Positions 343 to 63,290 of a DNA stretch of 64,000 nt are shown one piece after another. Source of the stretch: Epiperipatus broadwayi (Eukaryota; Animalia; Onychophora); assembly GCA_028023455.1 (NCBI GenBank), contig JAQFVV010000006.1, positions 6,262,001-6,326,000 of the forward strand, written 5' to 3'. The translations under genes were made by a program, and so were the position numbers. The notes beneath the pieces are model-generated. The model saw only the letters and a program-made list of their open reading frames with translations. It searched no databases and was not told where the DNA came from. Within the stretch, counting starts at the first letter, position 1; the number at the start of each line of letters is the position of its first letter.

Positions 343-735
343 ATACACGTGACCACACACATGTGAAAAAGATAAATAATCTCCAATATATGCATTTTGT
401 GCTGAGCCAGTACTAATCAGTTAGTCCAGATCATCATCTCCCACATATATATATAATCAATTCTCAGTTTATATTAAGGCAGCAAATTTTCACACTTAAT
501 GGACAGGATTCAACCTAGTCCACCCTTAATATAAACCGAGCACTGATTATATATATATGTGTGTGGAAGATGATGATCTGAAACAACTGATGAGTGCTGG
601 TTCAGCATGAAATACATATATTGGAGATCATTTATCTTTTTTACATGTGTATAGTCATGTGTATCGGTTGTATGAGATGGAGTAGATGGCTGAAGGGAGC
701 TTGAAAGTCTGTGTTCAAATCCCCTATATTACAGC
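343..735. mobile_element. Family A element, twin-arm (left arm antisense, right arm sense)
   Basis: Left ~343-540 and right ~541-735 are reverse complements of the family A consensus (aaagataaataatcaccaat...gtccagat); TSD not identified. Confidence 0.8.
574..630 (+). ncRNA. Type-I hammerhead ribozyme (family A)
   Basis: TGATCT-GAAACAA-CTGATGA-GTGCTG-GTT-CAGCAT-GAAA-TACATA-TA^-TTGG-AGATCA; intact core, 6-bp stem II, one stem I mismatch. Confidence 0.8.
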
Positions 736-1083
736 TAGACTCCAGAAATATATTTAAAATATATATAATATTGATAAAAACTGTATTTTACAATATTATA
801 TGTATTTGATATATAGTTATCCACTTTTATGGGTTTAAAATAAATAGAATTTAACTTTCCCACGTGATTCTAAAACTGTACATCAAAGAGGCTGTGTTTA
901 CATGTAGTTTATAGTATTAATTAGATTAGATATCTTTATATATATACCTGAAGTTGCAGATGTTCATAATCATTTCGCACTTTCTTTGTAGTGTACCAAG
1001 AACAGGTACTATTAAAGTGATTTTAAAATGTTCTGCTGAATTACAAAAATCAGAAAATATATATGTTCTGTATTTCGCATCAT

Positions 1084-1124
1084 CGCTATGAATACAAGGC
1101 AAACGGCCTCGAAAGCACTTAGTG
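1084..1124 (+). ncRNA. Hammerhead variant with A3/U8 core (family D-like)
   Basis: CGCT-ATGAATA-C-AAGGC-AAACG-GCCTC-GAAA-GCAC-TT^-AGTG; stems I and II pair, with CpG-decay-type mismatches. Confidence 0.65.
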
Positions 1125-1635
1125 TTTAATATTTTTTGCACTCTCTAGCTTCTCTTTTAAGCACTTCACACGCTTTTAATTTTATATATGTAATATTAGA
1201 AAAATGATGTATTTCATGTTACCCATATTGCATACAGTTGTTCTTTTATCTGGATTTTAAAATGAGTAGAAATGAACTCCTCCACATAAGTGTGATTGTA
1301 AAACTGTAGAAAAAGAGGCTAAACCACTAGTTGGATTATCTACTCTATGAATATCTGAATCTTCAAGTGTAAATAGTTGATTTATATTTGGTTAATGGTG
1401 TAATAAGCATAGGATGGGTAAAAGTGAATTGGTAGTGTTCCTATTGAGTTAGCAAAAATGGAAATTTCACTCATAGTATTAAAGAAATGATATACTTTAT
1501 AATATTATGATTAAATAATATTTAAAAGCTAAAAGAAGTAAGATTTAAAGATCGTTCAAAAGACACAATTTAGTTTTCTTCTTTTTTTAGTGAGTATAAT
1601 TTTTTTTTAAATAGCTACAATGAAAGTTATTTTTG

Positions 1636-3044
1636 TTTTGCATTATCTGTTTAATTAAAAATAAGAATTAAGATTGGGAAAAATGGAAACACATACAGAT
1701 TGCTAATCCAGATAGACAAAAGAAAGTAATTAAAATCAAAGTGATGTTCCTAATGCTTTTTAAAGATGGCCGAAATAATTTATAAAAATAGGATTTTGTA
1801 AATAAAGACTAACAAGGAATGTAGAAGATTATAGAATAATAAAACAAAAGATAAGAAAATATGTGCCGGACATCTCAAAAATGGTCCTCTATATAAAAGC
1901 AGACAAAGTTTAGAAATGGGCTTTTTACCTGTGTTTTTCTGTCTGTTCTTGTGTGCAGCATTTTTGAAGCTGTAATAAAATGCTATCACATAGAACTATT
2001 ACACTGAATCTAGTCTCCATGTGTGAGTAGAAACAGATCATTCGCTGACACCTCTCAGAAAAGTCACCAAAAGCTATGTCTATTCTTACCTAAATATGGA
2101 TCAAAAATGTGAAAGTGTTACTGGAATAAAACTATAAACAAATACTACAGACTCCTCATCAAAAGGAACTGAACTATTATGATCATCTACATAAACCTTA
2201 GAAGCTTACTGGTAAATTAATAACCATAACATAGCTCATATCCATAGAAAGAGATTGTCATTAAATAATAAATTGTTAATGTAGACAAAAAGAGAGACAT
2301 TTGTTATTTAAGACTTCAAAGTGAAATATTTGAATTCAGTAGTTTTGCATTATCTGTTTAATTAAAAATAAGAGTTAAAATTGGAAAGAATAGAAACACA
2401 TACAGATTGCTAACCCAGATAGACAAAAAAAAAAGTAATGCTAATTAAATATGGCTGAAATAATTTATAAAAAAGGACTTTGTAACTAAAAACTAACAAT
2501 GAATGTAGAAAATTATAGAATAAAACAAAAGATAAAAAAATATGTGCAGGACTTCTCAAAAACGGTCATCAGTATAAAATAATCGGACAAGTTTAGAAGT
2601 GGGCTTTTAACCTGTGTTTTTCTGGATGTTCTTGTGTGCAGCATTTTTGAAGCTGTAATAAAATGCTATCATCTAGAACTACCACACTGAATATATTCTC
2701 CATATGTGAGTAGAAACGGATCATTCACAGATACCTTCTCTCAGAAAAGTCACCAAAAGCTTCATCCAGCCTTACCTAAATATGGATCCAGAGATGTGAA
2801 AGTGTTACCAGAATGAAACCATAAACCAATACTATGAACTCCTCATCAAAAGGAGCCAGAATACTATGATAATCAATCATCTAGTTAAACCATAGAAGCT
2901 TACCGATAAGTTAAAGGCTATGTCATAACTCGTATCCATAGAAAAAGAGATTTGCAAACTGAATTTAAATAATAAATTGTTAATGTAGATAAAAAGAAAC
3001 ATTTGTTATTTAAGATTTCAAAGAAATATTTGAATTCAATAGTT
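1636..3044. repeat. Direct tandem duplication, ~707 bp unit x2, diverged
   Basis: ttttgcattatctgtttaattaaaaataag starts at 1636 and 2343; both copies end in tttgaattca(g/a)tagtt. Confidence 0.9.
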
Positions 3045-4867: not shown

Positions 4868-5060
4868 CACATGATTACCATTTCTTATGCTAGTGATCCA
4901 AAGCTCCTCACTGATGAAGGCCACAAGCCAGAAACTAGTCTGCGAATATTGGATGAGTAGGTACTAGATGGGGATTTTATGCACAAGCCTTCTGGCATCC
5001 ATTGATTACTCTGGTTGACACTGAGTGGCACTACTGTATGGAGAGTTTTGCCTGTGTTAA
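4868..5060 (+). mobile_element. Family B element (short inverted 3' arm plus sense arm) with hammerhead at 4896-4954
   Basis: ATCCAA-AGC-TCCTCA-CTGATGA-A-GGC-CACAA-GCC-A-GAAA-CTAG-TC^-TGCGAA-TA-TTGGAT; starts with inverted tcacatgattaccatttcttatgc. Confidence 0.85.
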
Positions 5061-5534
5061 GTTTACTATCCCCGACTACCGCCATCATCTCCCAGGCTAC
5101 TGTATTCTCTCAGTCATGTAATTTCTGACTCTCTTTTTTTTTTGTAACTGTTTATTATATATATATATTAATTATTTTCTTAACGCTCTAATGTGTACCT
5201 TTTTAACATTATATTTGTTGATATGCCATATATGTTAAACATGTATATTATACAGTGAAGCCATGAATTATTCTATATAACTATACACTACTTCAATTAT
5301 ACGCTATCCAAAAAAAGAATATAAATAAACAAAAAAAATGTAAATAAACAACAAGAAAAATAATACAATTTGTAAATTTAATTCATTTTACAATATGTTC
5401 ACAATCATTGTCCCTTCTCTGGGTACTGTCTGCAGTCATATTAAATAATACATTTTCTTCTGCTTGTATTGAAATATATATATATATTATCCTATCTTTA
5501 TTATCCTTTCAAACTGGATGTACAATGTATCACA

Positions 5535-5952
5535 TATATAGGGTATAAAAGCACAGACTTTCACACAACCCACCACTCTCCACTCTATCTAATAACACTT
5601 ATACACCTAAACACATATATGTTGAAAAGATAAATAATCACCAATACACGTATTTCATGCTAAACCAGCAATCATCAGTTAGTCCAGATTAGCATCTCTA
5701 CACATATATGCTATAAGTGCTCAGATATGTATTAAGATAGACAATCTTCATACTTTAATGGACAGGCTTCAATCTACTCCACACTCCAACTCTTCAACTG
5801 TCCATCCAATTGAAAATCTGATGATGGAATGCTCAAAGACCATCCTGAGGCCAAGATTCTTGTCACACCCATGTTGACCTAAGGTCAATCTGAACCCTAC
5901 ATGTACAGGATATAATCCATTTAATACATATGCAAGGATGGGCAGATATCAC
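5535..5952 (-). mobile_element. Family A element, near-full monomer, hammerhead at 5636-5690 (-)
   Basis: Minus strand reads ACTAA-CTGATGA-TTGCTGGTTTAGCAT-GAAA-TACGTG-TA^-TTGGT; matches other A copies. Confidence 0.85.
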
Positions 5953-7467
5953 ATAGTAAAATATTTTTTTAATGCAAGCTAAAAGTTTTACGAAATTTAA
6001 GAATATTTCTTTTAAATATAAAAGTAAACTGTGGACTCATTTGTCTATAGAAATATGCCACTCACCTCTACTATAATGACGGCTACATTACATTACGATC
6101 ATTTTTATTTTATTACTAGTGCATTAACATTTATTTGACCAACGTTGATTAACTTGAGAACTGTATCATTCAATTAAGAATAGCTAGGCACTCATTTACC
6201 GACTGTTTGATAGATAGAATGTCCAGCCTCGAAGCTGGATATCTGAAAGTAAAATTCTAAACTTATTTGGACTGGAATTGAATTCCAAGTTGTCACCATG
6301 ATAAATGGATACTAACCATTATTCTATGAGACATTTATAATCTTTGTTTATCGTATAATTAAATGTGTAACATTGTTCCACTACAAATCGAAATTTCAAA
6401 TATTCCCTCAAGGAAGAATATTCAAGGAAAGAGCATAACTCAGGTGCCTGAATTGATAGGTAATTAATGATGGTATAATTTAAATAGATTTTCATCTTCG
6501 ATTTAATTTTTGGAAACACAGCAAAATAACTTGCTTACTTATCAATATTGGATGATTAACCAATTGACTCTATGCGGGCTTATTGAAAAAGAACCCAAGT
6601 CTTATTAGAAACCGAAAAAATTCGTGAGCTTTTTGCAAGCCCGAATTCAAACTTATGTCATAAATATGGCAGGCGGATATAATATCACTGCACCATGAAT
6701 ATATCATATGCATAAATGAACTAATAAATAACCCACACACGAGTCTATTATATAATATTTTACAAACTTGAAACTTTTATCTGAAATAATTTTATATTTA
6801 CATGTTTAAGAACTCGTTGAGATATAAATAACTTGATTATTCGTATTTAGCATCTTTACAATTTACCTTATAATAACCTCTCTAAAAAATTTGCTCATTT
6901 ATAAATGACAGCTTTATATTTCATTTCTTGCTTTAAATACCCTCTCCTCTTCAGAATTTCTTTCTCTGCTGGTTGCAGTGTCTGAAGTTTTTGTACTAAT
7001 TTTAATTTCATTCACTTCGGAGTTCAGAGTTTTTAAGTGGTTTGTTAATAGTAGGTGAAAATAAAATAGTAACTTAATTTAGAAATGGCGAATTTCTTAG
7101 TAGTTAAAGCTATAGCATGGAATCGGTCATTAATGAGCTTAATTTAGATTAGTAGCTATAAAAAGCTCTTAGCAAATACGAATTTTATGTAAAACATTTT
7201 GTATTGTAAAACGTTTGGTTTAAATTACATAAATATTCTTTTATAAGAAGAACTATAGTAACAAAAATTCTAACGTCCTTTTTTTTATTTTACGCCTTAA
7301 CTGTTATCATTATCGTAAACAATTACAGGCCCTACAATAACAATTAACCCTTAAGATATCAACAATCTCAACTTGCAGTCAAGCTTAAGGGTTGATTGTT
7401 ATCATATACATTTATAAAACCTATTAAAGCCTTGAGGAATTGGCTTTATTGCCTTAATATACTTATA

Positions 7468-8136
7468 ATATATAAGGTATATGAGCAAAGACTTTCACAC
7501 GACCCACCATTCTCCACACTATCTCATAACACTGATACACTTGAACCCATATATGTTGAAAAGATAAATAATCACCAATATATGTATTTCATGCTAAACC
7601 AGCAATCATCAGTTGGTCCAGATTACTATATCCACGTATATATGCTATAAGTGCTCAGATATATATTAAGATAGCCAAACCTCATACTTTAATGGACAGG
7701 CTTCAATCTACTCCACACTCCAACTCTTCAACTGTCCATCCAATTGAAAATCTGATGATGGAATGCTCAAAGTCCACCCTGAGGCCGAGATTCTTAACAA
7801 TCATCAGATTTTCAATTGGATGGACGGTTGAAGAGTTGGAGTTTGGAGTATATTGAAGCCTGTCCATTAAAGTATGAGGTTTGGCTATCTTAATATATGT
7901 CTGAACACTTATAGCATATATGTATAGAGATGGTAATCTAAACCAACTGATGATTGCTGTTTTAGCATGAAATACTTATATTGGGGATTATTTATCTTTT
8001 CAACATATATGTGTTCAAGTGTATCAGTGTTATAAGATAGTGTGGAGAGTGGTGGGTCGTGTGAAAGTCTATGCTCATATACCCTATATATTACATATAT
8101 AGACACAGGTATATAATAAGCCTGTGTGTTTCAGTT
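7468..8136. mobile_element. Family A twin-arm insertion, 15-bp TSD, hammerheads at 7569-7625 (-) and 7934-7990 (+)
   Basis: TSD cttaatatacttata at 7453-7467 and 8137-8151; arms ~7468-7796 and ~7801-8136 are inverted copies. Confidence 0.9.
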
Positions 8137-8499
8137 CTTAATATACTTATATAAGTATGGCCCTTGTGCAAAAAAAAAAAAAAAGGAAATATTAGTCATT
8201 TAAAAAAACATGAAACTCTATAAATAAATATAAAGATATTCATTATATGAATAATATTTCGTAATGTAATTTACTATACCACTCTCACGCAAATTAGGGA
8301 CCGATTTCTATCTGCTTTTAATACCTTGTGGAGGGATGTAATCACAAACATATGACCAAAGACATGAAAAAGATGCAAGAACCATCACTTGCCAGTTGGC
8401 CCAGATCACAATTTCTTACATATATCTTCATCATTGTTGTATAATGAAATATTACAGTTTAATTGATGACATAAACCATTTAATGGAAATATATTAATA

Positions 8500-13945: not shown

Positions 13946-14126
13946 TAATTATTTAAAAAGTAATATATTCATATTTATGCTTAGGTTTTTTGAAATATGT
14001 TTCATTTTTAAAAATATAAGTCAAGAAATTTGAAGTAATGTAACAGAGGAAAAACAATAATTGTAATTATTATGGTTGTTAAATAGTGTGTTTCTGAATT
14101 TTAGTGATAATTCAATAAATATAAAT

Positions 14127-14672
14127 AATATAAAGGGTATATGAACACAAACATTCACATGACCCACCACTCTCCACATTATCTCATAACACTGATACAC
14201 TTGAACACATATATGTTGAAAAGATAAATAATCACCAATATACGTATTTCATGCTAAACCAGCAATCATCAGTTGATCCAGACCATCTCCACACATCTAT
14301 GCTGTAAGTGCTCAGATATATATTAAGATAGCCAATCCTCATCCATCATCAGATTTTCAATTGGATGGACGGTTGAAGAGTTGGAGTGTGGAGTAGATTG
14401 AAGAGTGTGTATTAAAGTATGAGGTTTGGCTATCTTAATATATATCTGAGCACTTATAGCATATATATGTGGAGATAGTAATCTGGAACAACTGATGATT
14501 GCTAATTTAGCATGAAATACATATATGGGTGATTATTTATCTTTTCGACATATATGTATTTAAGTATGAGATAGTGTGGAGAGTGGTGGGTCATGTGAAA
14601 GTGTGTGCTCATATACTCTATATATTACATATATAGACACAGGTATATAATAAGCATGTGTGTTTCAGTTAT
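14127..14672. mobile_element. Family A twin-arm insertion, ~11-bp TSD, hammerheads at 14229-14285 (-) and 14479-14535 (+, stem I decayed)
   Basis: TSD taaatataaat at 14116-14126 and 14673-14683; minus-strand HHR has the perfect ATACGTAT stem III palindrome. Confidence 0.85.
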
Positions 14673-15091
14673 TAAATATAAATGCAATTTTAAAACAGAA
14701 TTTCATATATTTATAGTACCTTTATAATTAATTATTCATGTATTCAATCAACAAAGATTTTGTTAATTTATCTTTTACAACTAGATTATGACAAAGAACT
14801 AATAAGCATAAAGTCATTGTTATCATTATTTTTCACATATTTTTTTTTAATTTTATATTACATTTAAAGATCAGCCTTTCAAGCTAATTGTGCATGTGTC
14901 TTGAAAGGCTGATCTTTGAATGTAATACAATTGTACACATAGCATCATATAAAAATAAATGCTTATTTAATTTTATATTGGAAAGTTCAAATATAATTTT
15001 TTAGAATGTTTTATTTGTTTTAAACTTACATTTTCAACAAATCAAGTTCAATTCATTTATAATGTCAAAAAAAAAAAAAACATTTTTTTCC

Positions 15092-15188
15092 CTCATATGT
15101 CATAGCATCAGTTGGGAAGCGAATCCGCTAACCCGGGACAACTGCTTGTAAAGCAGCTGTCACTGACCTTTGACCACCAATGCTTGAC
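15092..15188 (-). mobile_element. ~100 bp tRNA-like SINE
   Basis: Minus strand GTCAAGCATTGGTGGTCAAAGG (A-box-like)...GGATTCGCTTCCC (B-box-like)...ATGACATATGAG plus A-tail. Confidence 0.75.
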
Positions 15189-16838
15189 TAAAAAAAATAT
15201 TTTAACACTAAACTTAAAATGTTGAACTATAAGCAAAAATCCCCACTAGGGGAAGGGGGAAATGTTCAGATCTAAAATGTACATTTGGGCTAAAAATGAC
15301 ATGATAATATCTAACTTAATAAAAGATTGGTAATACTCTTTAAGATATTTATTTAAATTGGATGGTGTCAAATATATGAGTGCCAGAAATTTGGCAGATG
15401 TTTAAATCAAATTGTCAATATGCATCAAGCAGGTGAAATAGACTGGAGGTTTTAAAATATATCTATAATATTACACATGGGAAAAAATGAGGGCACTTGG
15501 ATAAACATACCATGTAGTTATATTTGATAAAAATAAAATATCTTAATCTTTAATTAACCTTAAAGTTTATATCTGGGCTAAAAATAATCTGATATTCATT
15601 AACATATTTATTTCAAATTGACACTGTCAAAGGGGGGAGTGCAAAATATATGGCATTTACAAATTAAATTATAGTTATTTTATATATAATAGTTCTATTT
15701 AAAAGGTAAACATCATTTCTTACTATTAAACAGCATATTTTAAATGTGGCGTACTCTCACCAACTACAAAATAAAGACTTTGAGAAAAGGACAATCTTGC
15801 TAATATTAGAAAATGTTAAAGCATGTAATTATAGATTAGATACTAGATGCTATACAACAAATAATCACTTGTAAATATATATGTCTGTGTGTGTGTCACT
15901 TTAAATAATTTCTAATAAAATACAACTTTAACCATTTACCTACTATTTTGGGAATAGATAAGTTTAGAAAGCAATAAGCCAATAAATTAGCTGATTTTAG
16001 TATTCAAAAGAAAACAAACATTTTGAACATTATTTAAAATTACTGCTAATAAAAAAAAATTATTGGACCAAAAAATATAACAGTGAAATACCATTGGAAA
16101 TAATTATACCAACGAAACAAATAAGACTTCACATAATCCCAACTTACATAATGCTGTTCAGTAAAAAAGTCTCCTTCACTACCATCTACCTTCTACTGAT
16201 TACTCAAGCTGCCACTAGGTGGCATAAGAGGGAAGAGAAAAAGAATTTACCATTGAATTATGTTAATGAAATATTACTGCAAATAATTATAATCAAATAT
16301 GTATGTTGTTAAACTGGAAATAAGGTGTAAATTAACAACTTAAACAAAGTTTACACAAAACAACCAATCAAATCTTCAGTGATAAATACCATCTTTGATG
16401 TTTGCTAAAACAACTGGCCAATCAGTTCTTCTAGCACAATTTCACAACTTACAATGTTACTTATTAGCTGGCAGTTCCAAATGAATTCTGAAACATTTAA
16501 ATATTGAGTAATCTATGTACATTTCATGCTTTAAAACTTGTTTAGTTTTGATTTTGATATTTTTTTCATGAAAAGTTTGTAATGAATAAAAAACTACGAT
16601 AATGTAATGTTCATTAATGTTGTAACAGCTTAAAACGTGTATAAAAACTTAGACGAGATGTGATAATTCTTAAACCACATTACATAATTTTTAATTGAAT
16701 TTAGAACATGCGTAATAATGCTTACCACACTCAATATCTGTACAATCAGCCATTAAAAAGTAAAACAGCCTTTACATTGCCTGTTTCGAAGCAAAGACTT
16801 CTTCAATAGTCTATTATAGAACTGTGAAAAAAAAGCCA

Positions 16839-16946
16839 GTCTTGCATTGGTGGTCAAAAGGTCAGCGCGACTGCCTAGCACTTGCAGGCAGTTGCCCGGG
16901 TTGCGGGTTTGCATCCCGGCCGATGCTATGACATTTAAAAAAAAAA
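16839..16946 (+). mobile_element. ~100 bp tRNA-like SINE
   Basis: Same family; A-tail; aaaaaaaagcca duplicated on both sides. Confidence 0.75.
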
Positions 16947-17335
16947 GCCATTACAAAGATTGCCAATTGTCAGATGATAAGAACATGGAGACCAATAGCT
17001 AAGAATTTCTGGATATTAATTTCCTGATCAAAAGATATGGTAAACTAGGTTGGGTATGAGTCAGGTACATTAAAAAAATTAGTCGTTATCATTGGAATCT
17101 AAAATAAAAAAGCTTTCAAATTATACAGTCTGGATGAGAATTCCAGCATATGACTGACTTTTATATTATATATTTACAAGTTTAATTGGTTGATTTAACT
17201 TTTTTTTTTTTTAAGATTTAATGTAAATTAAACAAAAGATGTTAGCGGTATGGGAAAAAAAATGTTGGGAACCACTCAGCCTGCTGGCAAGTTGCATTTC
17301 TAAAGTGTACAAAATAAATTAAAGTATTAATAAAG

Positions 17336-17792
17336 TATATAATTGTTAATTAGAGAAGATATTAATTAGTATTAAAGTTTATCGGCTTAACGTTTTCGAG
17401 GATCCATGCCTCATATTCATAGCCTTCATAAAATGTATAATAAAATATGCAAATACAAATATTCAAATAAGCTAGCATTACGTAGCCCATTTCTTCGAGA
17501 TCTCGAAGCAAGTATCCTTTCTATTAATGGCATGGATGTTTCCATTGATGTAAAATGCCTTCTTCCATGCCATTAATAGAAAGGATACTTGCTTCGAGAT
17601 CTCGAAGAAATGGGCTACGTAATACTAGCTTATTTGAATATTTGTATTTGCATATTTTATTATACATTTTATGAAGGCTATGAATATGAGGCATGGATCC
17701 TCGAAAACGTTAAGCCGATAAACTTTAATACTAATTAATATCTTCTCTAATTAACAATTATATATTTTACATATAGTGAGAAGTAAAGCTAT
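17336..17792. mobile_element. Family D very young twin-arm insertion: 201-bp arms (1 mismatch), 27-nt spacer, 14-bp TSD
   Basis: Arms 17336-17536 and 17564-17764; right arm extends 28 nt further; TSD aagtattaataaag at 17322-17335 and 17793-17806. Confidence 0.92.
17668..17722 (+). ncRNA. Type-I hammerhead, A3-U8 core variant (mirror copy at 17378-17432, -)
   Basis: TTTAT-GAA-GGCT-ATGAATA-T-GAGG-CATGGAT-CCTC-GAAA-ACGT-TA^-AGCC-G-ATAAA; perfect stems I and II, palindromic stem III AACGTT. Confidence 0.8.
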
Positions 17793-18526
17793 AAGTATTA
17801 ATAAAGCTAAATTTAAAATTTTAAATATACATGTTATATTTGATAAATAAGTTATATATAGGTAGGTATAGTTTTTTCTATAAATAAAATCCATATTTTG
17901 TTGTGAATTTGACAGGTTATGGACAATAGACGAAGTATAGATTTTATAAAAGATTATTTGTTGGAGAGCTCGCTGAATAAAAAAAAATCTGAGGGTGTTA
18001 CAGTAAAGCGATACTGACAAACATATTCAGACAACAGACAAAATAGAAATTTTATATATAAGGATTATTTCATATGAGCACATTACGTATGCAGCAAAAA
18101 TATTTACATTTAAACCCATCAAATAGATACAGTCAATACAATGTCGGCACACATTCAATAATTTTGTTTGAATTAAATAAAATTGATTGAATAATTTGTT
18201 CCGTACCCTACAATTTTAATGACTGGTTTATTTGTTATTTATATAAAAATATTTATTTATTTAAAATGTAATTACCAGTTTTTCAAAAAAAAAATTGTGT
18301 TTGTTTTAAAAAAGATTAAATAGGAAATTTTGTTAATGCTAAAATAATTTGTCAAAATTAGTTTACTTAAAATCGGGGGGGGGGGGGGACAAATTAATTT
18401 GCATTAAAAATCACGAAAGTTTAATTAATTGCAAAAAGAGAGAAAGAGAAAGCCAAAGAATAAAAAGTTAAAAACAAAAAAAAGAGAAAATATAGATTGA
18501 ATTGTTATATGTATAATACCACTAAA

Positions 18527-26765: not shown

Positions 26766-26827
26766 CTCAAACAGGATCTTTAGCAACAAGAGAATATACA
26801 CATAAATGAAAAAATATGGGTGATTTA

Positions 26828-34179: not shown

Positions 34180-34247
34180 TATATTATTTCATATAAATAC
34201 AATTATTTTCTTTATTTTACGTACTTTATCACAATCTTTTATATATA

Positions 34248-40799: not shown

Positions 40800-40983
40800 A
40801 AATATAGGGGATTTGAACTCAGACTTTAAGCAACCTTAAACTATTCACATTAGCTCATACTACTGATACACATAACCCACACACATGTAGAAAAGATAAA
40901 TAATCACCAATACACATGTTTTATGCTGAACCAGCATTCATCATTTGGTCCAGATTGTCATCTCCCACACACACACACATATA

Positions 40984-41038
<55 letters not shown>

Positions 41039-50505: not shown

Positions 50506-53139
50506 TATATTCTTTTTCTATTGTAAATGAAAAATTCTGCTATAACTCATGTAATTCAATTTGTAAATGGCATTCTATTAGCATATATTCATAGATAATT
50601 AACAATTTCATTATTAAGTACTGATATTCTTTGTAAAAATTATATATTATTTTTTTAATCTAGATATATATATATAATGTCGGTAATGGTATAACTATTA
50701 TCACCATTTACTTGTATTATTAAAAGTTTTTAGAAGAATTAAAATTATGGGCTGATCATATACTTAATAAGAATTCATGTTTAGATTTGAAATATTTCTA
50801 ATTATAAGATCTAAATATTAACTCGCTGTGAGTCAAAAGATTTCACAAATGTTGATTTCTAAATGAGGTAATGGACTTAATTAGTGAAGAACTTACTAGC
50901 TTCACACTCTCAAATCAAAATGCTTTAGATTTGCCTATATAATTAGAAAGTATGTTGAAGATAAGATGGCCACTCATCTTTATAAAGTCGTAATCTTGTG
51001 GTAAGATTTGTAGAGGTCCCTCCCATGATAAAATTGAGCACTCGAGATGCATAGTAGTAAGGTCAATGCCTTATATATATTTTTGAGCAATATTGCTTTT
51101 TTCTCTACTTCAGATGTTTCTGACTTGATCAATGATATCACAAGCAGGAAAATCAAATTTGTGAACTTTGAATATGTGCGTTAGATAAGTGAGTAATGAA
51201 ATAATATCAATTTTTTAACCAACTTGGCTATTCTGTCATGGGTAACAGTCAGTAGATATTATATACACCTATCTGTGAACATCTTGATTTCACTATTTTT
51301 TCCTGTTAAGTTCAAGGTCAATGAGTGATTTTGAACCATTATAAATTATCACCCTATGCTGACTTATGAGTTTACTAGCCATTGTCATCTGAGTAGAATC
51401 TTTAAATTTTCTTCTCCTCTCTGCCCAATATTCTTGCCTTTTCCAATATGATATATGTTAATTGGAACATACATTTCTACATGTATATGAAAACATAAAA
51501 TGAGGATAATAGCTTATAAACTAGAACAACTATTTCTATTGATGGCACAGTGGAATTCTTAATAGCTTGCATAATGGTAACATTCTTTCAGTACAACACA
51601 GAATTCATCCAGTAAAGTTATGGGATAGCTGTGAGCTGAACACCATAACCCCTGAATCAGTCAGCAACATTTACATCCAAAAACATAAAAGCACAGTCAC
51701 AAATACTACTTTTAAAGTTGGCTTCACTATACAAACAATTAAATCATTTATCATACGGCCATAAACCTTATTCCAGATGTTTTGGACACACATTATAACC
51801 ATATTTCCATTACTTGAATCAACAGCTCATTTAAAATAAGAACACAAAATTGGCATTCTTAGATATTTCTAAGACTCCCTTGTGGCAAAATAAAAACTAT
51901 ATAGTCCTCAGAATGCCCTCATGCACATGAAAATACTTAGCATATACATCCAATCATTATAGAAACATGAAAAATGGAGTTGTACTACTATTTTGGATGA
52001 GAACAAGAAAAAAATTTTCCAAAACCAGTGACTAAATAAAAGAAAAGTTCAACAGATAACAAACATTTATTCATCAGTTATTATAAACAAAATATTAAAT
52101 AGATAATGATATGAAATAGCAAAAGAAAGCTCAATTAGGGATATGGGTAATATATCCACACATATCAAGGATATAAGTCAAACTAAAAAAAATCTATAAT
52201 CAGTATATTAGTCAAATGACTTTCCAAAGCTATATGTCATAATGAATCCCAAACTCTACTAAACCTAATCCTAAAATGAAGAAAAATGAAAAATGAAGAA
52301 AAATGAAACATGCCTCTGTAAAAGAGCTTGTTTTTAATGGGAAAGATGTATACAATGGACCGGCTCTATCAAAAATAATTTATAAAGCATAAAATAATAA
52401 TTAAGAAATAAAGTATGGAAGTTCTAAAGTAAAGGACTATTTATTTTTGTATTTTTTGTTGAATTATGAGAAATATTTTAACTTTGAGATTGTGTTTGTA
52501 GTAGGAATATATGATTAAGTAAAACATATATGAAAAGTTATTGTCTTTTTAACACAGTACCTTAATTTCTAATATTTATGGCTGAATTAATCATCATTAT
52601 CTATTATATCGTTCTCTCTGTGCTTTCTTTCACATTACCAGGTTAACACAGTGACCAATCATCAAGAGTTTTTCGTATCATCTCTTTCTAAATGGGAACA
52701 TTTGTGCAATAATATTTATGTCCTTTAATTAAAAACATAACGTTTCTGATTATGATTGTTTTATTTCTATATTTATTTTCTAGTGTTTTATTCATTACCT
52801 TTTTATATCTATTTTTTCTTTTCTTCTACTAGTATAATTGCCATTCTTATTAAGTACGATTGCTAATTATGATAAAAGGTCATAAATGAATAAGGACTGG
52901 TTATTTGGGAATAAATACACTGATTGTAACTCCCCTCCCAAAATATTATTGTAATAAAAGATAATCCTCACCATCAGTAAGCCGATGCCAAGCCCTTATG
53001 AGTACTGAGATTAAGGTTTGCCTTTAACTTTAAATTCTGTAAACTACACGAATGCACTAATCAAAAATTAATACTTAAAAAAAAAATAATATATGACTTT
53101 TTTTCTACAATACAGGCTTTTTCATACCTGCACTCCAAT

Positions 53140-53350
53140 ATGTAATATATAGGAGATTTGAATTCAGACTTTCACCGATCCTCAATTATCCATGCTATCT
53201 CACACTGCTAATACTCTTGATCACACACAAGTCGAAAAGATAAACAATCACCAATATATCCATTTCGTGCTAAACCAGTACTCGTCAGTTGGTCCAGATT
53301 ATCATCTCCACACATATATACAATCAATGCTCAGCCTATATTAAGATAGC
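53140..53350 (-). mobile_element. Family A fragment with ancestral-like hammerhead at 53245-53301
   Basis: TAATC-TGG-ACCAA-CTGACGA-GTACTG-GTT-TAGCAC-GAAA-TGGATA-TA^-TTGGT-GATTG; G10.1-C11.1 pair and both CpGs kept. Confidence 0.85.
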
Positions 53351-53909
53351 CAATAAAAATAATGTACACATAATTTAATAGTGATATAATAACAGAAGAT
53401 AACTTTTCTTCTCACTAATTACAATGCAAATCACACACATATTTAAAGATAGGTAGAAAATGGATAAGGTATTTTAAAAATCAAACATTTCTGTAACTTC
53501 TACTTTTTTTAAAGTTGATTTTTGCAGCAAATTGACCTACAATATTCTGAAGTTAAACGACTAATTTAACAAAGCTCTTAATAAATGATGAAGCACATTA
53601 ATTTGAAATCATGAATAAACTGTTCGTGTCAGTCAAGATGAATTAAGTAAACAACTTTCTCAAGAGCTCTCAGATTAAGTGGTTATCTTTGCGTCTATAT
53701 AAAGATGCGTGCACACACACACACACTTCCTTTATAAATTATTCTGATAATTGCATTATGTCTTTTAACGGCTATATAAACTTTTGCCTTTATAGCACTC
53801 GCATCATATCAATATTAAACATTATTTTTTGATATAATTTTAAATATTTCAACTATTTTGTTTTTGCATTAGATGAGATTTAATTGATTTTCAGAGATAT
53901 ATCAATATT

Positions 53910-54686
53910 CAAAATAAGAGTCATAGATCACATGACCCTATATCTTAAGCTTGTAAGTTATAAACAATGAGGATTGCCAATTCCTCTACAAGCTTTATGA
54001 TAAATGCTTAGCCAGAGCCAGCACTTAAAATATCTGTCAGGAACCCCTCCCCAAACCCCTGACAATGGTTTCGTGCTTTGGCACTCCTCAGAGAGGTGTC
54101 AGGGTAGGTTCAGACACTAGATCTAAAAATACCAATCCAAAGCCAAGCACTTAACTAAAAGTTATTTATTGAGTGGAAAATCTGAAATTTTCGGACATCT
54201 ACATGTCTTCGAACCCAGCTATCCAACTCAAATACCTATATGGGGCTGATAGATCTTCAGCCATACCATATATTAGTAGTCTTAGCAATATAAAATTATA
54301 TAAGCCTTATGGCAGAGACTATAAATAGTCAAAATAAGAGTCATAGATCACATGACCATATCTCTTATACTTGTAAGTTATAAACAATGAGGATTGCCAA
54401 TTCCTCTACAAGCTTTATGATGTTTAGCCAGAGCCAGCACTTAAAATATCTCTGTCAGGGACCCTCCCCAAACCCCTGACCATGGTTTTGTGCTTTGGCA
54501 CTCCTCAGAGAGGGGTGCTAGGGTAGGTTCAGACACCAGATCTAAAAATACCAACCCAAAGTCAGCATTTAACTAAACGTTATCTATTGAGTGGAAAATC
54601 TTAAATTTTCAGACATCTACATGTCTTCAAACCCGCTATCCAACATTTATTATAAAGCTTGTAGAGGAATTGGCAATCCTCATTGT
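53910..54686. mobile_element. Family C2 insertion: head-to-tail dimer (420-bp unit, -) plus 38-bp inverted arm, 13-bp TSD; hammerheads at 54055-54097 and 54472-54514 (-)
   Basis: TSD atatatcaatatt at 53897-53909 and 54687-54699; ACCTCT-CTGAGGA-GTGC-CAAA-GCAC-GAAA-CCATTG-TC^-AGGGGT is fully canonical; the second copy has G12>A. Confidence 0.93.
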
Positions 54687-55197
54687 ATATATCAATATTG
54701 TTGTTGTTTTGTTGTTTTTTTTTTGAGATGAGAAAAATTAAAAATATTTTCACTGAGACTTAAAATTATCCTATATCTTAGTACTATTAGATTTTGTGTA
54801 AAAGATTGGTTTGTATAATCGTCGCAAAATTCATCTCTAGTGGATAATTATTTTACCCCCCCCCCTTGGAATTGGACTGATCACATTCGTTTGCGAATTG
54901 CTGATGATGATTTAAAAAAAGAGAAAGAAATGAAAACTGAAAGAGAATAATATTTTTGTTTTTACATTGTGTTTTTAAATATATTTTTAATTTTGATGAA
55001 ATTTTTAAAAATGTAATAAATTTTCGATTTTTATTATGTTAAATATTTATCTAAGACTGCTTAATCCTAATGGTAATTCACCAATTTTGAAATAAAATAT
55101 ATTAATGTTATTAATAAAAATTTATTAGACTGGAGATTATTATATTAATGCCTAGATACAGAATTTAAATTCAATAAATTTGCAAATATAAAATATT

Positions 55198-55297
55198 GTC
55201 AAGCATTGGTGGTCGAGAGGTCAGCGATGGCTGCTTTACGAGCAGTTGTCCCAGATTAGCGGGTTCCCTTCCCGGCTGATACTATGACATATGAGAA
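55198..55297 (+). mobile_element. ~100 bp tRNA-like SINE
   Basis: Same family; atataaaatatt duplicated on both sides. Confidence 0.8.
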
Positions 55298-55984
55298 AAT
55301 ATATATAAAATATTGTAATTTACAAAAAAAAAACACACGAATCCTTCAGCTAAATGATTTTCTTGCTGTTGAAATTCTCTTCTATGGCTTTATAAACATT
55401 TATTTATTTAATACTGTATTAAATGATTAAACTTTTAAAAACAATACGAAACCATCTTTAGAAACGAACGGGGGAAAACACATTAAATTTATTAATGAAA
55501 CAGAATTTTATTAAACAATTTGATAAAGAGTTTACTTCTAATATTACTCTCAGTGAAACAAAATTAACTTTGTTAGCAAAAATCAAAATATTAACATTTA
55601 AGAAGAGGAAAAAAACGAAAATTTAATTTCATAATCTTTCGATGTTTATTTAATTCTATGAAAAATAACACAGAATGAAATCTTTTTCTCTCTCTTTTAT
55701 GATTGATAAAATGCCGTTTTGTAAATATTCTTTAGCTTTCTAATTTAAATGGCTTGTAAATAATCCACGAACTCATTAATAAAATAATTATGTATATATA
55801 ATTCACAAGAATAAAACCATCATACAAACTTCCATATTATATTTTTCCATTTACAAAGAATCATAAACTATTATAAAACAAACCACTATATAATATTCTC
55901 TTTTTATTATTAATATAAAAATTATTCATAAACAACAATATTTAATGTTTCAGTCAAGCTTTGTTAGCCATCCTCAAAATTAGA

Positions 55985-56100
55985 AACTTATAGAGATCTC
56001 TGATGAAGATTGCAGGACAGTTGAAACTGTAAGCAAAATAAAGAAATTTATATAAAAAAGATTGCATTAAAGTGTATAAGAGACGATTAAAAAAATTTAA
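55985..56100 (+). mobile_element. Family E fragment with hammerhead at ~55997-56034
   Basis: TCT-CTGATGA-A-GATTG-CAGGA-CAGTT-GAAA-CTG-TA^-AG. Confidence 0.7.
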
Positions 56101-56459
56101 TATATATGAACTCATTAAAACTAAGTTTCTGATTTTTATTGGTAAATTTAAACAGGAGTATAGTTTTATATGAAGGCATAAATTAATCAAATAATAGTTA
56201 ATTCTGAAGATAGCTATTGAGATTTGATCAAAACTTTAATCGTTATTTTTTTGTAAATAAAGTTCTTCCATTAATAATAATAATAAAAATACTGTGAATT
56301 GTTTTCTATGATAGTTTACAATTATACATATATATTAAATATTGCCTAATCCTATACTAGTCATAATAAATAAAATATAAATTTGTATAACATTACAATA
56401 CTAGCCAAAAAAACTACACGTTACTAAAATTCTTTCATAACCATGGTTATATCTATTAA

Positions 56460-57039: not shown

Positions 57040-57310
57040 ATATTTACATATCATACCATTTCCAAACTTCTTATACACTTAACAATACAATTTTTACACC
57101 AAAACTTTACTCTTACAGTTTCAACTGTCCTCCAATCATCATTTAAAATACTATTTTTCCACCAAACCTTTACCCTTACAGTTTCGACTGTCCAACCATC
57201 ATAAATCTCTGATGATGACTGCAGGACAATCAAAACTGTGAGAGTAAAGTTTTGGTGTAAAAAATAATATTGTTAAGGGTATAAGAAGAGTGGAAGTGGT
57301 ATGAATCTGA
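57040..57310. mobile_element. Family E twin-arm element with decayed hammerheads (57206-57243 +; two partial copies on -)
   Basis: TCT-CTGATGA-T-GACTG-CAGGA-CAATC-AAAA-CTG-TG-AGA; antisense ctttactcttacagtttcaactgtcc occurs twice. Confidence 0.75.
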
Positions 57311-57505
57311 AGACATCACTCTCATGAAAATGATGTTTTTGAATTGAATGATGGAAACATTTTATTTTGTATATATCTTGTTGAAATTCACTTGAAAAGG
57401 ACTATTTATTAATAGGTGAATTCATGGTCATGGAAGGATTTTAATTTTAAAAAAATTGTTTTTGCATAGTATTGCAATGTTGTATGATTTTCTATTATAT
57501 ATATT

Positions 57506-57818
57506 AATTATAAATATGCGACTTTTTTCGCATGCGTTAGTGAAGCTATAATTATACTTAAAATAATGTTTAATAGGTCTGCTTAGCGCTTTCGATTTAA
57601 TGTTCGAATCTCATACTCATAGCTTTGTGATTGAAGTTTGTTGTGATTTATTGTACACATATGCAAATAAGTTTGAATATTTAATTAGTCCGTTATTTAG
57701 AGAGAGCAAAGCATGCCTCTCTTCTATTATTTTAAGTATAATTATAGCTTCACTAACGCATGCGAAAAAAGTCGCATATTTATAATTACAATTTTTATTA
57801 GTGAAGAGAAAAACAATT
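57506..57818. mobile_element. Family D2 young twin-arm insertion (63-bp perfect inverted arms), 13-bp TSD, A3/U8 hammerhead variant at 57581-57623 (-)
   Basis: Arms 57505-57567 and 57726-57788; TSD tattatatatatt at 57493-57505 and 57819-57831; GCT-ATGAGTA-T-GAGATTCGAACATTAAATC-GAAA-GCGC-TA^-AGC. Confidence 0.8.
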
Positions 57819-58689: not shown

Positions 58690-60030
58690 ATTGATTATGA
58701 TGTCACAATTTAATTTACTGCCTGAAGACAGGTAGAGTACTAATGCACCACTCTGCTGTGGCTAGTAAGAATGATAGTGTGTCATGATAACTTCTCTGTT
58801 TGAAGGTAGATAGAATAATTAGGCAACATATTGTTATTATTGATGAAGATTATGTGAGTTAACTTTATCAACTGAAGGCAGCCAAAATAATTAAGCAATA
58901 AAGTATAGAAGATATCAGTAAATAAGCAATCCAGTTATACAATTGATAGTGATTATGATCTCTATGTTAATTCCATTGTTAAAGGCAGATAGACTGACTA
59001 GGCAACAATACTACCATTGATAGTGATGATGTTACTTGTGTTAACTTCTCTAACTGAATGCAAGTAAAGTAATCAAGTAATACAATACTATAATTGATTA
59101 AGATAGTACATGCCAATTTTTCTGAAGGTGGCTAGAGTAACTGGATATGCAGTATCATAATTAATGATGATAATAGTATGAGTGTTAAGTTCTGAGAAGG
59201 TAAGCAGATTATTTAGACATCATAGTACTATGATAATATTAATGGTGCATATGTTGACTTCTCTGTCTGATGGCAAGAATAGACTACACAGTACTATTTA
59301 TTCACAATGAATATGGTATAGTGTTAACTTCTCTACCTGAAGACAGGTAGAGCAAGGAGACAATCTATGACTATGATTGATGATGATGGTGATGTGATAA
59401 TTTCTGTATCTGAAGGCAAGTAATAAACTAGGCTACATAGTACTACTACTCATGATAAATATGGTTTACATGTCAACTCCATTTGAAGGCAGGTGGAGTA
59501 AATAAACAACCCAGTACTATGATCGATGATGATGATTATCATGTGCTAGTTCCTCTCTCTGAAGGCTATTAAAAAACTGAGCTACATACTATTACTCATG
59601 GTGATGATAGATCATGTATTAACTTCATTATTAGGGGGCAGATGGAGTAACTAGACAAACAAGCACTAGGATTGATGATCATATGTTAACTTCATTGTCT
59701 AAAGGTAGGTAGACTAATTAGGTAGTGCTGTGGATGTTGGTAATATGCAACATGATGACTAATGATGATGATGTATTGCATTGACTTCTCTGCCTTCAGG
59801 CAGGTATTAGAAAAACCAGTAAGGTAACAATACAGTAATATATGGTGATGATATCTAAAGAAATTACACTAATGAATGTAAAGGGAAGGTCTACACAAAA
59901 ATAATACTATGACTTAGGATGATAAAAGTATGTATGTATGTTGATTTTCTCTTTGAAAGCAGTAAAAATGATTGAGCAACACGAAGATGATAGTAAGGTA
60001 TAATGAGTTAACTTCTTGGCCTGAAAGCAA
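58690..60030. repeat. Degenerate ~72-bp minisatellite, roughly 17-18 units
   Basis: gttaacttctctgtctgaaggcaggtagagtaactagg...tgatgatgat recurs every ~70-76 bp. Confidence 0.8.
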
Positions 60031-60739
60031 GTATATTATATCATCAGTGGTCGGGAAGCATTAAATGCTATCATTCTCGTAACAAAATGTATTGTATCAT
60101 TCTCAATTTTAGAGATGCACCTTAAATCTCAATGAGCCCCTTATTATTAAATAATTAATAATCAGATTTCATAATTAAAACTTATATAATCATAGATTAG
60201 ATATAATGAATAAATATTTTTTAAAAAAAATCTATTTCTTCTTAATTAATTGATGTAAATAATTACAAGAACGTCTTTATTTTCTAATGTACCTTCAAAT
60301 GTCAGAGCTATTAGTACTTAATTTGTAATGTCGTTTTTTGTTGTTGTTGTTTTTTTTTTTATCAATCTTTTTCTTTTTAAAAAAATCTCATAATATATTC
60401 AAGAATATTATACTCATAAACATATACATATATAAAACACTAGAGTTTATTAATCATAAAACTAGTACAGGACCAGCCACAATTAAAAAATATAATTCAT
60501 TATATCAGTTAGTATATGGCACAGACTTTGAAATTATTTTATAAAACAAAACAGGTTAACTTATTTTAATGAAATCAGAAATATCTACGTCATCTCATAA
60601 AGCTAATTTTGCAATGATATCGAATAAATTTATAGATACCGTATTTAAATAAGTGTTTCGAATGTAAAACTGATTTCAATAATTTTAAGGATCTTGTAGA
60701 TAATAGTGCATAATTAAAAAGCAGTAATATACCAGTAAA

Positions 60740-63290
60740 TTTTTTACAGAAACAAAAAATGAATATAAAAAAGAATTAATAGTGATGTAGGAAAATATAA
60801 TTGTGAATTAACAAGAGAAGCTATAGAAACGAATGAACATATCACAAGTATAAAACAACATCTTGGTATTGGTAAATTACAAGTGTAAAACAACATCTTG
60901 GTGTTGGTAGGAAACTTATTTATACAATAAGAAGTAAAGAAGAAACTATTACTTTTAAAAAAAAAGAAAGATGACATCATGATATGTATGGAAGAATTCT
61001 ATAAAGAAATATACTAATAAAAAGCAAGAAAACAAAGTATCATCAACAATTATTATATCCTCTAAATTGTCCAGCACTTTAAATGAAGAAGAAACACATG
61101 AAATTAAATCTATGAAGAAGTGAAAAACTCCAGGAAATGATGGAATTTTAAAAGAAGCAAATGAAATAGAAAAAGTAGTCAGCAAAGGGGTATCTCAAAT
61201 ATCTAAATGATAAACATGCATCAAATGATTGAAATAATGCAGCAATAATATTGATATTTAAGAAAGGTCTTATAGAAGTCATTAGAAATTATGGACCTAT
61301 CGATCTTTTATCAGTCCTATACAAAATTTTACAAACATATTTACAACTCATCTACAGGGAACTTTGGATTTAACCAACCAAAAAAGCATGCTCTATTTAA
61401 AAATGGTCCTAGTATACTGAATCAAATCCATGTACTGAGAAAGTTATAGAAATGTCCCATAAATATGGGTAGCCATTATGCTTTGGATTTATAGATTATG
61501 AAAAGGCATTTGATTCTATAAGAATTTCTACAATACTACATGGTCACCATTCTTTATGCTTAGACAAGCTGTTTACACACAGGCTAAACTGTCAATATAT
61601 GTGTCACTCAGTGCAAGCCAGAGTAATCAATGGATACAAGAAGGTTTGTGTACAAAATCCCTATCTAGTGCCTACTCATCCAATATCCCCCCGACAAGTT
61701 TCTAGCTTGTGGATTTCATCAGTGAGGAGCCTTGGATCTGAGAGCACTGCACCTAGATCTTAAGATCTAATGCAACCCTCCAGCTGCAATCTTTTACCAT
61801 TATTAGCCAACTATAAAGCTTTGGGTTCAAAATGAAAACAATAATGTTTTCAATTCAAGCTCATCAACCTGTATAGTCTATAGATCTGAACTCAGTTCAT
61901 CATCCATATTTTTTGGTGTCTTTGATTCTTTATATTCACAGTCAACTTAATATTAGGATTGTTATTAAAGAACCAAAGATGCCAAAAAGTATGGATGCTG
62001 AACTGAGTTCAGATCTATAGACTATACAGGCTGATGAGCTTGAATTGAAAACATTATAATGTTTTCATTTTGGACTCAAAGCTTTATAGTAAAGGTAGCT
62101 GGTGATGGGTTGCATTAAAACCTAAGATCTAGATGCAGTGCTCTCAGATCCAAGGCTCCTCGCTGATGAAATCCCCAAGCTAAAAACTAGTCTGGAGATA
62201 GATATTGGATAAATAGGCACTAGACAGGGTTTTAGGCACAAACCTTCTTTCATCCATTGATTATTCTAGCTTGCACCGAATGGCTTTACTGTATGGAGAG
62301 TTTAACTCTGTGTAATTTCTACAATAATTAAAACATTGGATCATCAAGATACAGACCCTGTATATTGTTATACTCTAAAGAATATCAAATGCAACAGTAA
62401 TTTTTAAATTACATAGAACTAATAAGGTCAATAGTGAGAAGGGTGTGTGGCAAGGTGATTCCATATCTCCAAAATCTTTTTCCACACTTTTACCAAATGT
62501 ATTTTGTGAATTAAAATGGTAAGATAAGGAAATAAAAATTAATGGAAGATGTTTAAGTCATCTAGATTCTGTAGATGACAATTATTTTTTTGCAAATAAT
62601 GGTTCAGAGCTTCAGAAATCGTGCAAGAATCTTCAGTTGAAAGTAGAAACTTAAATACTAAAAAGACTAAAGTAACATTGTGGATTTTCAAAGAAGAAAA
62701 TAAGGATTGATAGCAATGAATTAGAAGATTGACAATTACAAATACCTTGCTCAGATTATCAATACAGGTGGAAACATAATGGATGAAATTAATCGTGGAA
62801 TTTAATTGGATGGAGAACTTTAGGTAGAAAAGACTTAATATCAAAAGGAAGAGGTCTATGTGTTTGAAAAGGAAAGTTTTTAATAGATGTCTTTTGCCAG
62901 TTTTTATTTATGAATCTGAATCTTGGACTTTTAAAAGAAGAGCACAATAGAGACTTGACATATGTCAGGAGTAACAAGAAGGGATCGAAAATGAAATACA
63001 TGGATAAGAGAACAAGCAGCATCATGTCAATCATTGAAAAGGATTATGAGATTGAAAATGAAACTGGTCTGGAAATGTTTCTAAAAGGGATGATAATAGA
63101 TGAATAGTTGAAATCTGAAGCTGTATCCTGAGAAATTGTAAAAAAATCTAGAAAGAGACCATGTGATGTAGTTGGATGAAATAAGATGCTCATTAGGTTA
63201 TGAGAATAGAGATAAGAGAAACTGAAATAAATTTGGAGATCTTTATCCTACAGGTCAATAATGATGGTAAATGATAGTGATGATGATGAA
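60740..63290 (+). pseudogene. RTE-clade LINE ORF2 (RT) relic, split by a family B insertion
   Basis: TPGNDG, IFKKG, NYGPIDLLS, DYEKAFDS (61495-61518), KGVWQGDSISP (62439-62471), SVDD (decayed FADD); (GAT)n tail ~63280; many frameshifts and stops. Confidence 0.9.
61536..62313. mobile_element. Family B twin-arm insertion, 13-bp TSD; hammerheads at 61678-61737 (-, core intact) and 62148-62210 (+, G12>A)
   Basis: TSD aatttctacaata at 61523-61535 and 62314-62326; removing the insert restores RTE colinearity. Confidence 0.92.

Follow-up and report, generated by a model that had tools for sequence, protein, structure and literature searches.

How are short repeats that encode no protein, carry a hammerhead ribozyme motif and lie in the genome as paired inverted arms copied and inserted? 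This question is raised by a stretch of 64,000 nucleotides (nt) from the onychophoran Epiperipatus broadwayi (contig JAQFVV010000006.1, positions 6,262,001 to 6,326,000; hereafter the window), in which several families of such repeats, named A, B and C/C2, occur side by side. An earlier note on this DNA had proposed that they replicate through self-cleaved, circular RNA and are inserted by the enzymes of a Penelope-like element (PLE). Our analysis makes it likely that A, B and C, together with a further family, F, from elsewhere in the genome, are animal retrozymes of the type without long terminal repeats (non-LTR retrozymes), copied in trans by the reverse transcriptase (RT) and GIY-YIG endonuclease of co-resident active PLEs. 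The evidence lies mainly in the anatomy of the insertions, which the non-coding families have in common with protein-coding PLEs of the same genome.

Hammerhead families of the window and the genome

The window has a G+C content of 27-32% and comes from a 5.6-Gb assembly of an AT-rich animal genome. About 30% of it (19 kb) is repeated inside the window itself, and self-comparison split these repeats into several clusters. An open reading frame (ORF) scan of the 64 kb found none of 150 amino acids (aa) or more. The hammerhead core pattern CTGANGA-N4-30-GAAA matched 27 times, against an expectation of 3.65 ± 1.95, and 27 matches were reached in none of 100 shuffles. Family probes located 24 hammerhead regions that belong to A, B or C, 16 of which retain the two core boxes intact; sites of a minimal type come on top of these, so that the window holds at least 30 hammerhead sites and the earlier estimate of about 25 recognisable copies was a fair one. 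A structural parse placed all hammerheads of the window in type I, as had been claimed, with helix I open and the parts in the order helix I 5' strand, CUGANGA, helix II hairpin, GAAA, short helix III, cleavage site and helix I 3' strand. In most families a palindrome makes up helix III (TACGTA in A, CTAG in B, CCGG in F, and AACGTT in a family that the earlier note had called E); in C2 it consists of a 2-bp stem with a 4-nt loop. Families A, B and C have canonical hammerheads, in which helix I measures 6 bp and helix II 4 bp. Comparison with Rfam also gave sub-threshold matches to MIR5380, MIR399, MIR530 and a Wolbachia small RNA, at 7693-7866, 17494-17606, 61867-62031 and 27722-27858. As RNA genes these were rejected; they are long hairpins formed at inverted-arm junctions.

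All genome-wide copy numbers given here are first-look candidates from sequence searches. The reference unit of family A was taken from 33597-34068 and opened at the predicted cleavage site, where the junction falls between ...TACGTATA and TTGG.... This unit measures 472 nt in the window, where the family has nine insertions, and 475 nt genome-wide, where it has 2990 candidates, the best of them 475-nt units at 97-98% identity. For family B, whose unit is about 449 nt, the 7726 candidates share about 82% identity with the copy in the window; arms of this family exceed one unit, and its candidates have both tandem and inverted neighbours. Units of family C/C2 measure 417-421 nt in the window; arrays elsewhere have units of 434-435 nt, and the 3047 candidates include arrays of six 435-nt units with inverted neighbours. 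Family F combines a canonical hammerhead and a 410-nt unit with tandem plus inverted arms. The unit lengths given earlier (about 472-475, 452 and 417-420 nt for A, B and C2) agree with our values. Throughout A, B and C the units stand head-to-tail, one hammerhead to each and no ORF between them, in arrays of up to 4.85-6 units. Minimum-energy folds of the monomers were closed and branched, with z-scores against shuffles of -2.24 (A) and -2.72 (C2), a modest effect. Families A and C were also present in runs labelled as a second organism (X6 and X7), at 90% identity or more and with high summed depth over 32800-37700, which suggests that they are older than the split of at least two related species.

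Twin-arm insertions and Penelope-like elements

For family A, 25 independent loci were dissected. The layout was always a minus arm followed by a plus arm, head-to-head, the arms being 0.4-4.85 units long with inner ends random within the unit. The outer (3') ends were far more regular: 41 of 46 lay at unit positions 108-122 or 155-168, with a small stem-loop in the stretch between the two. In each of the 19 twin arms that could be classified, a short 3' end was paired with a long one, the two differing by about 45 nt (P ~2e-6 under independence), and no pair was short/short or long/long; the other four had one long end and a second outside both clusters (74, 88, 95 and 394). Target-site duplications (TSDs) were found in 17 of 18 usable genomic composites of this family and in eight window elements, with a median of 13 bp and a range of 9-15 bp. 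The inverted arm pairs with AT-rich TSDs of the earlier note, put there at 11-15 bp, are confirmed in the window, where the TSDs, with that of a single arm included, measure 9-15 bp. Overlaps at the inner junctions of family A (median 3 nt, up to 12 nt) indicate joining by microhomology. The same short/long rule was seen for B, with ends at 116-121 and 156-177, and for C, with ends at 102 and 150-169. Between their short and long ends B (unit about 150-165) and C (about 125-140), otherwise unalignable, share the motif TCATGTGAT / ATCACATGA, as at 18520-18545 and 19700-19715 of the window; it may be a recognition element shared for one PLE.

These features bear on two explanations that involve DNA alone. 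Tandem units of constant length are what satellite-like repeats, spread by recombination or extrachromosomal circles, would give, but in this genome the arrays are short and dispersed in their thousands, and every one has a TSD of its own, an inverted arm as partner and 3' ends at defined positions, and we consider such an origin barely conceivable. Foldback or MITE-type (miniature inverted-repeat transposable element) DNA transposons, with the arms as terminal inverted repeats, would account for inverted repeats between direct duplications and for the microRNA-like Rfam hairpins at the arm junctions. They would not account for TSDs that vary from 9 to 15 bp, random inner junctions, multimeric and unequal arms, ends that differ by a tail of about 45 nt, single-arm copies that have TSDs, or coding PLEs of the same layout, and we give them almost no credence.

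A GIY-YIG search of the genome returned more than 10,000 first-look candidates, with open frames of up to 901 aa and frequent head-to-head pairs. At locus L047 a 3135-bp unit carries an ORF of 877 aa with a YVDD RT motif and a GIY-YIG match of 39.5 bits; more than two such units stand in tandem there, along with an inverted arm, at 97-99% identity. The Pfam score came from the C-terminal piece alone; the whole ORF gave no match, for which its richness in Lys, Asn and Ile is the probable reason. The composite at L048 is complete, with an 11-bp TSD and ends at +87 and +147 from its hammerhead, and L038 has a 12-bp TSD, a one-sided tail of 46 nt and ends at +94 and +145. L070 (C6225:2229300-2232400) consists of a tandem 2474-bp unit with an intact 763-aa RT/GIY-YIG ORF (RVT_1, 39.9 bits; a C-terminal VVY...YYGET motif is visible and was left unscored by Pfam), and its 3' ends recur at 100% identity in at least 40 genomic copies, so that it looks currently active. 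Distant homologues carry PF00078 and PF01541. BLASTP between two of the PLE proteins gave no alignment, which suggests very distant lineages.

No canonical hammerhead was found in the PLE loci searched, and Rfam gave zero matches on three of them, their hammerheads being core variants that the model does not score. The minimal form consists of TTGAAAA, an extra base, a helix II of 5-6 bp, GAAA and CGTT; it was found, as U3/A8, at 12 of 15 loci, and its helix II covaries between lineages (GATTGT/ACAATC, GACTGT/ACAGTT and GACTAT/ATAGTC). At L070 the predicted hammerhead is an A3/U8 version. Partial tandems or pseudo-LTRs, an inverted arm and a one-sided tail were seen among L047, L048, L038 and a truncated copy, E, described below. 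Coding PLEs and A, B and C share the twin-arm layout, the multimers and short TSDs, of 11-12 bp in the PLEs. This common architecture, in elements with frames of 763-877 aa, supports the earlier claim of insertion by a PLE RT/GIY-YIG protein. Families A, B and C themselves encode no RT or endonuclease, as they contain no such ORF and tblastn of the PLE protein found no match in the window, and they behave like passengers of PLEs and not like PLEs themselves. We infer that they are mobilised in trans by PLEs, and regard this as well supported. At L041 (875-1357) a copy of A lies inside the 3' untranslated region (UTR) of a PLE, between stop codon and hammerhead, which fits the reported targeting of PLE ends; a chimeric A/PLE twin arm was considered here and rejected in favour of an A insertion within that UTR.

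Could all the families be nothing but 5'-truncated pseudo-LTR fragments of autonomous PLEs? For E this is the case. Its right arm recurs at 100% identity at 40 or more genomic sites, two of which are 2474 bp apart, and the stretch between these two encodes the intact 763-aa protein of L070. Both arms are 99-100% identical to the last 60 nt or so of the L070 ORF plus the 3' UTR, each holds an A3/U8 minimal hammerhead, and the right arm bears a tail of about 23 nt that the left arm lacks. Judged by this identity, family E is a 5'-truncated twin-arm copy of the autonomous 2474-bp PLE and not a non-coding family. Of the at least five separate non-coding families counted earlier, A, B and C are confirmed as such, and E has to be withdrawn. 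The minimal-hammerhead twin arms at 27471-28036 (U3/A8) and 34223-34609 are probably truncated PLE copies as well. Extended to all families, a fragment origin seems very improbable to us, as the units of A, B and C, 420-475 nt long and each with its hammerhead, follow one another head-to-tail in a window that has neither a long ORF nor a tblastn match to the PLE protein.

Trans-mobilisation by PLEs would then proceed as follows. The endonuclease would place two nicks 9-15 bp apart in AT-rich DNA. The element RNA would offer two fixed starts in its interior, about 100-120 nt and about 150-175 nt past the hammerhead cut, with the small stem-loop between them, and from each freed 3'-OH reverse transcription would begin at one or the other of these. 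The two cDNAs would extend toward each other, often beyond one unit length, and be joined through a few bases of microhomology. The expected outcome is a target duplication around a pair of head-to-head arms, whose inner ends are random and whose outer ends are fixed, one of them short and the other long. By the same process truncated PLE copies would arise, such as E and probably the further twin arms with minimal hammerheads. For the purified PLE of an anole (Poseidon PAc) matching behaviour has been reported: the protein cuts and extends both strands, prefers AT-rich sites, and has two internal RT starts, which delimit the tail. They lie 111-118 nt into the ORF, about 85-92 nt past the hammerhead cut at position +26, and in vitro they are the same on both strands (PMC11167929).

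The RNA template and the state of the hammerhead

Arms of these insertions always traverse the predicted hammerhead cleavage site and are often longer than one unit. Since the 3' ends lie 100-175 nt past that site and the arms reach back through it, the junction would have been intact in the template, which on this sequence pattern was presumably a circle or an uncleaved multimer. Units are 98.8% identical within an arm, 98.6% between the two arms of one insertion and 98.1% across loci. The strict short/long pairing, together with arms as alike as units within one arm, could mean that one RNA was copied twice. Under such a tentative scheme, possible though still doubtful, the PLE ribonucleoprotein would act as a dimer on a single RNA, plausibly circular; its two start sites, in phase and on either side of the stem-loop, would each serve one target strand.

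The competing account of the template also relies on PLEs and dispenses with circular RNA: unprocessed linear multimers, transcribed from genomic arrays, would serve directly, and the hammerhead would be dispensable or used otherwise, for transcript trimming or protein binding. Arms that run uninterrupted across the cleavage site agree with it. If so, 5' truncation should shrink the array templates, yet a family that is only 1-2% diverged makes arms of 2-4.85 units. Loss at the 5' side in each generation and the persistence of multi-unit arms argue for a step that regenerates multimers, which by inference might be rolling-circle copying. The hammerhead is moreover more conserved between subfamilies than the remaining unit, and animal retrozymes of this type are recorded as circular RNAs in other species (PMC7229834). 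On balance we judge linear templates to be unlikely.

The conservation just mentioned was seen when old A subfamilies were compared: in the 84 nt around the hammerhead they share 80-89% identity, whereas over the remaining unit the figure falls to 69-73%. Within a family decay is even, both in B and in mid-age A (89.4% for the hammerhead, 86.6% for the rest), as expected of dead copies, so that only the comparison between subfamilies reveals constraint. Helix I shows compensatory changes between subfamilies (ATAGTC/GATTAT, ATGATC/GATCAT and GGTGA/TCACC), and helix II of family B alternates between A-U and G-C pairs. Conservation and covariation of the hammerhead core relative to its flanks, which the earlier note had set as its test, are thus present. 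Decay in A most often hits the CpG of helix III, where TACGTA has turned into TACATA or TATGTA. The pair at 10.1-11.1 is G-C in the copy at 53 kb and G-U in two other old A subfamilies.

Several observations weigh against retrozymes that pass through ribozyme-processed RNA and are served by PLEs of this genome. First, in the consensus of young A, drawn from 136 genomic units (L005-L034), positions 10.1 and 11.1, normally G-C, form a U-U mismatch, and 55 of 78 complete cores are identical; in the youngest and most prolific family A this mismatch may weaken cleavage, and it also counts in favour of linear multimers. The same is true of the anole experiments, in which the PLE protein took unprocessed RNA and hammerhead mutants were inserted normally, insertion in vitro being independent of hammerhead cleavage (PMC11167929). 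Second, no site in the window passes the curated gathering threshold of Rfam. In E-value mode 54055-54097(-) is the best hammerhead of the window and the only one reported, at 30 bits against a cut-off of 34. Scoring with hammerhead models, which the earlier note had suggested, therefore succeeded for family F, at 40.2 bits, and fell short for the window sites. Third, units of A, B, C and F compared with 16 PLE loci gave only chance-level or nested-insertion matches and no partner PLE; intact PLEs, which the earlier note had proposed to look for, exist, but pseudo-LTRs resembling the retrozyme 3' ends were not found at these 16 loci. Finally, the sequencing runs, which are neutral as to expression and circles, are assembled contigs of uncertain type that carry no strand, end or RNA information; in four of them, over 32800-37700, depth follows repeat copy number, and unique DNA is covered at low depth, also in those presumed to be RNA.

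Window insertions and known systems

The insertions of the window are collected in the following table; in twin arms the strand column is empty.

Hammerhead-bearing insertions of the window (unit positions are counted from the predicted cleavage site of the respective family)
Feature	Position	Strand	TSD	Details
A twin arm	32894-34193		14 bp, TATATTATTTCATA, at both ends	minus arm 32893-33265, unit positions 168 to 271; plus arm 33262-34184, unit 141-472, full 472-nt unit 33597-34068, then 1-116; three intact hammerheads, 33069-33094(-), 33563-33588(+), 34035-34060(+)
A twin arm	7453-8151		15 bp, CTTAATATACTTATA	minus arm 7470-7795, 3' end at unit 109; plus arm 7802-8140, 3' end at 158
A twin arm	14116-14683		11 bp, TAAATATAAAT	arm ends at unit 121 and 161
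A single arm	5528-5955	-	9 bp, TATCACATA	unit 168-472, then 1-109; hammerhead 5653-5678
A single arm	28830-29210	-		about 84% identity to young unit; hammerhead 28939-28964
Older A-like subfamily twin arm	343-733			72-77% identity to young unit; hammerhead 587-612, G10.1-U11.1 pair
Older A-like subfamily twin arm	36667-37603			about 68% identity to young unit; hammerhead 36765-36790(-); compensatory helix I changes GGTGA/TCACC
Older A-like copy	40801-41430	-		1.2 units; hammerhead core decayed
Older A-like arm	53109-53349	-		hammerhead 53263-53288, G10.1-C11.1 pair
B twin arm	18506-19170		13 bp, TATATGTATAATA	minus arm 18511-18687, 3' end at unit 176; plus arm 18709-19159 (slightly more than one unit), 3' end at 120
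B twin arm	61523-62326		13 bp, AATTTCTACAATA	arm ends at unit 156 and 121; hammerhead 61699-61722(-)
B single arm	26293-26767	+		unit 154-449, then 1-177; hammerhead 26562-26585, helix II GGCC/GGCC
B short arm	4895-5056	+		intact hammerhead 4911-4934
C2 insertion	53897-54699		13 bp, ATATATCAATATT	minus arm of 1.8 units (53892-54644, unit 417-421 nt); plus arm of 48 nt (54644-54691); hammerhead 54069-54091(-), the top Rfam match of the window (30 bits)
Older C twin arm	19690-20423			70-77% identity to C2 unit
Older C arm	35083-35405	+		hammerhead 35364-35385, helix II decayed
Family E twin arm (judged a truncated PLE)	17322-17806 (element 17336-17792)		14 bp, AAGTATTAATAAAG	A3/U8 minimal hammerheads 17394-17420(-), 17680-17706(+)
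Short twin-arm element (probably a truncated PLE)	34223-34609			PLE-type minimal hammerhead 34256-34282(-); extra base after A9; 5-bp helix II
Twin-arm element (probably a truncated PLE)	27471-28036			U3/A8 PLE-type minimal hammerhead 27556-27585(-)
Single arm of about 128 nt, short hammerhead family	55983-56110	+		hammerhead 56000-56026; family with 1432 first-look candidates genome-wide, elsewhere as twin arms and 231-nt tandems

Other repeats of the window were noted in passing. Repeats of about 105 nt at 15083-15190, 16838-16945, 31381-31486 and 55195-55299, of which 15104-15183 gives a tRNA match of 28.9 bits against a cut-off of 29, are probably a tRNA-derived short interspersed element (SINE). 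At 1635-3044 a unit of about 700 bp, unrelated to the hammerhead families, occurs in two direct copies at 82% identity. Further foldback elements lie at 57051-57304 and 57492-57801, with inverted self-matches at 73-75% identity.

Retrozymes of the non-LTR type have been described from other animals as tandem units of 150-450 nt with type I hammerheads and TSDs above 4 bp, present in several families per genome, expressed as circles and thought to use PLEs; one coral has 16 hammerhead families (PMC7229834). In Xenopus there are 57 retrozyme families, with kinship to PLE pseudo-LTRs (10.64898/2026.07.22.740005). Like the elements studied here, metazoan non-LTR retrozymes are non-coding and low in GC, with units of 170-970 nt, a type I hammerhead in each, dimers to multimers, TSDs above 4 bp, several families per genome, and PLEs as co-residents and proposed helpers; the RNAs of the published retrozymes are highly self-paired, and in the folds of A and C2 this effect is modest (PMC7229834; 10.64898/2026.07.22.740005). 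In the onychophoran, by comparison, the dissection resolved for each insertion two head-to-head arms, a microhomology junction between them and 3' ends that pair short with long; neither of these two reports mentions inverted arms for retrozymes. Circular RNA has been shown for those species; for the elements described here it is putative. The retrozymes of plants, which have LTRs (PMC4918200), are likewise non-autonomous, with hammerheads that delimit a circularisable RNA, and borrow retrotransposon enzymes; the features that set the plant elements apart are absent here. Many parallel families with one insertion architecture, for which the earlier note knew of no described case, consist of main components that are all published, and the system belongs to a known kind, the animal non-LTR retrozymes, and forms no new category.

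Insertions of PLEs are known to comprise partial tandems, an inverted 5'-truncated copy and a tail of 30-40 bp at one end (PMC8557442). Autonomous PLEs with an endonuclease resemble the present elements in their pseudo-LTR partial tandems, the inverted 5'-truncated upstream copy, a tail of tens of bases at one end, AT-rich targets, extension of both target strands and two internal RT starts downstream of the hammerhead (PMC11167929, PMC8557442). Families A, B and C differ from them in coding no protein, in units six to seven times shorter and in canonical hammerheads, the PLE hammerheads of this genome being minimal, U3/A8 or A3/U8, with an extra base after A9. For minimal PLE hammerheads U3-A8 core covariation and a base between positions 9 and 10.1 have been described (PMC4209133); the PLE hammerheads found here share both traits, as well as a long helix II and a helix III that is palindromic and very short. 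The A3-U8 version of L070, an apparently active PLE, goes unmentioned in the passages of that source that were consulted, and no further search for it was made.

In summary, what the analysis adds is a dissection of each insertion, which shows retrozymes carrying the whole footprint of a PLE, including the strict pairing of short and long ends. Until now the case for mobilisation of retrozymes in trans by PLEs has been built on co-occurrence and on the kinship of pseudo-LTR sequences. In this genome thousands of insertions, all very young, show that the footprint of non-coding hammerhead elements is that of coding PLEs: duplication length, inverted arm, multimers, paired short and long ends, and starts about 90-170 nt past the hammerhead agree. 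This gives direct structural support to the trans-mobilisation hypothesis and provides an in vivo counterpart to the two-strand, two-start-site biochemistry of the anole PLE. If the tentative scheme of a dimeric ribonucleoprotein on one RNA were true, the two cDNAs would chase each other round the template, the pairing of ends would be an in vivo rule unseen in the published in vitro system, and retrozymes would be a natural reporter of PLE mechanics. Since young A combines a helix II that looks weakened with multimeric arms, it could be used to test whether ribozyme efficiency is linked to the form that insertions take.

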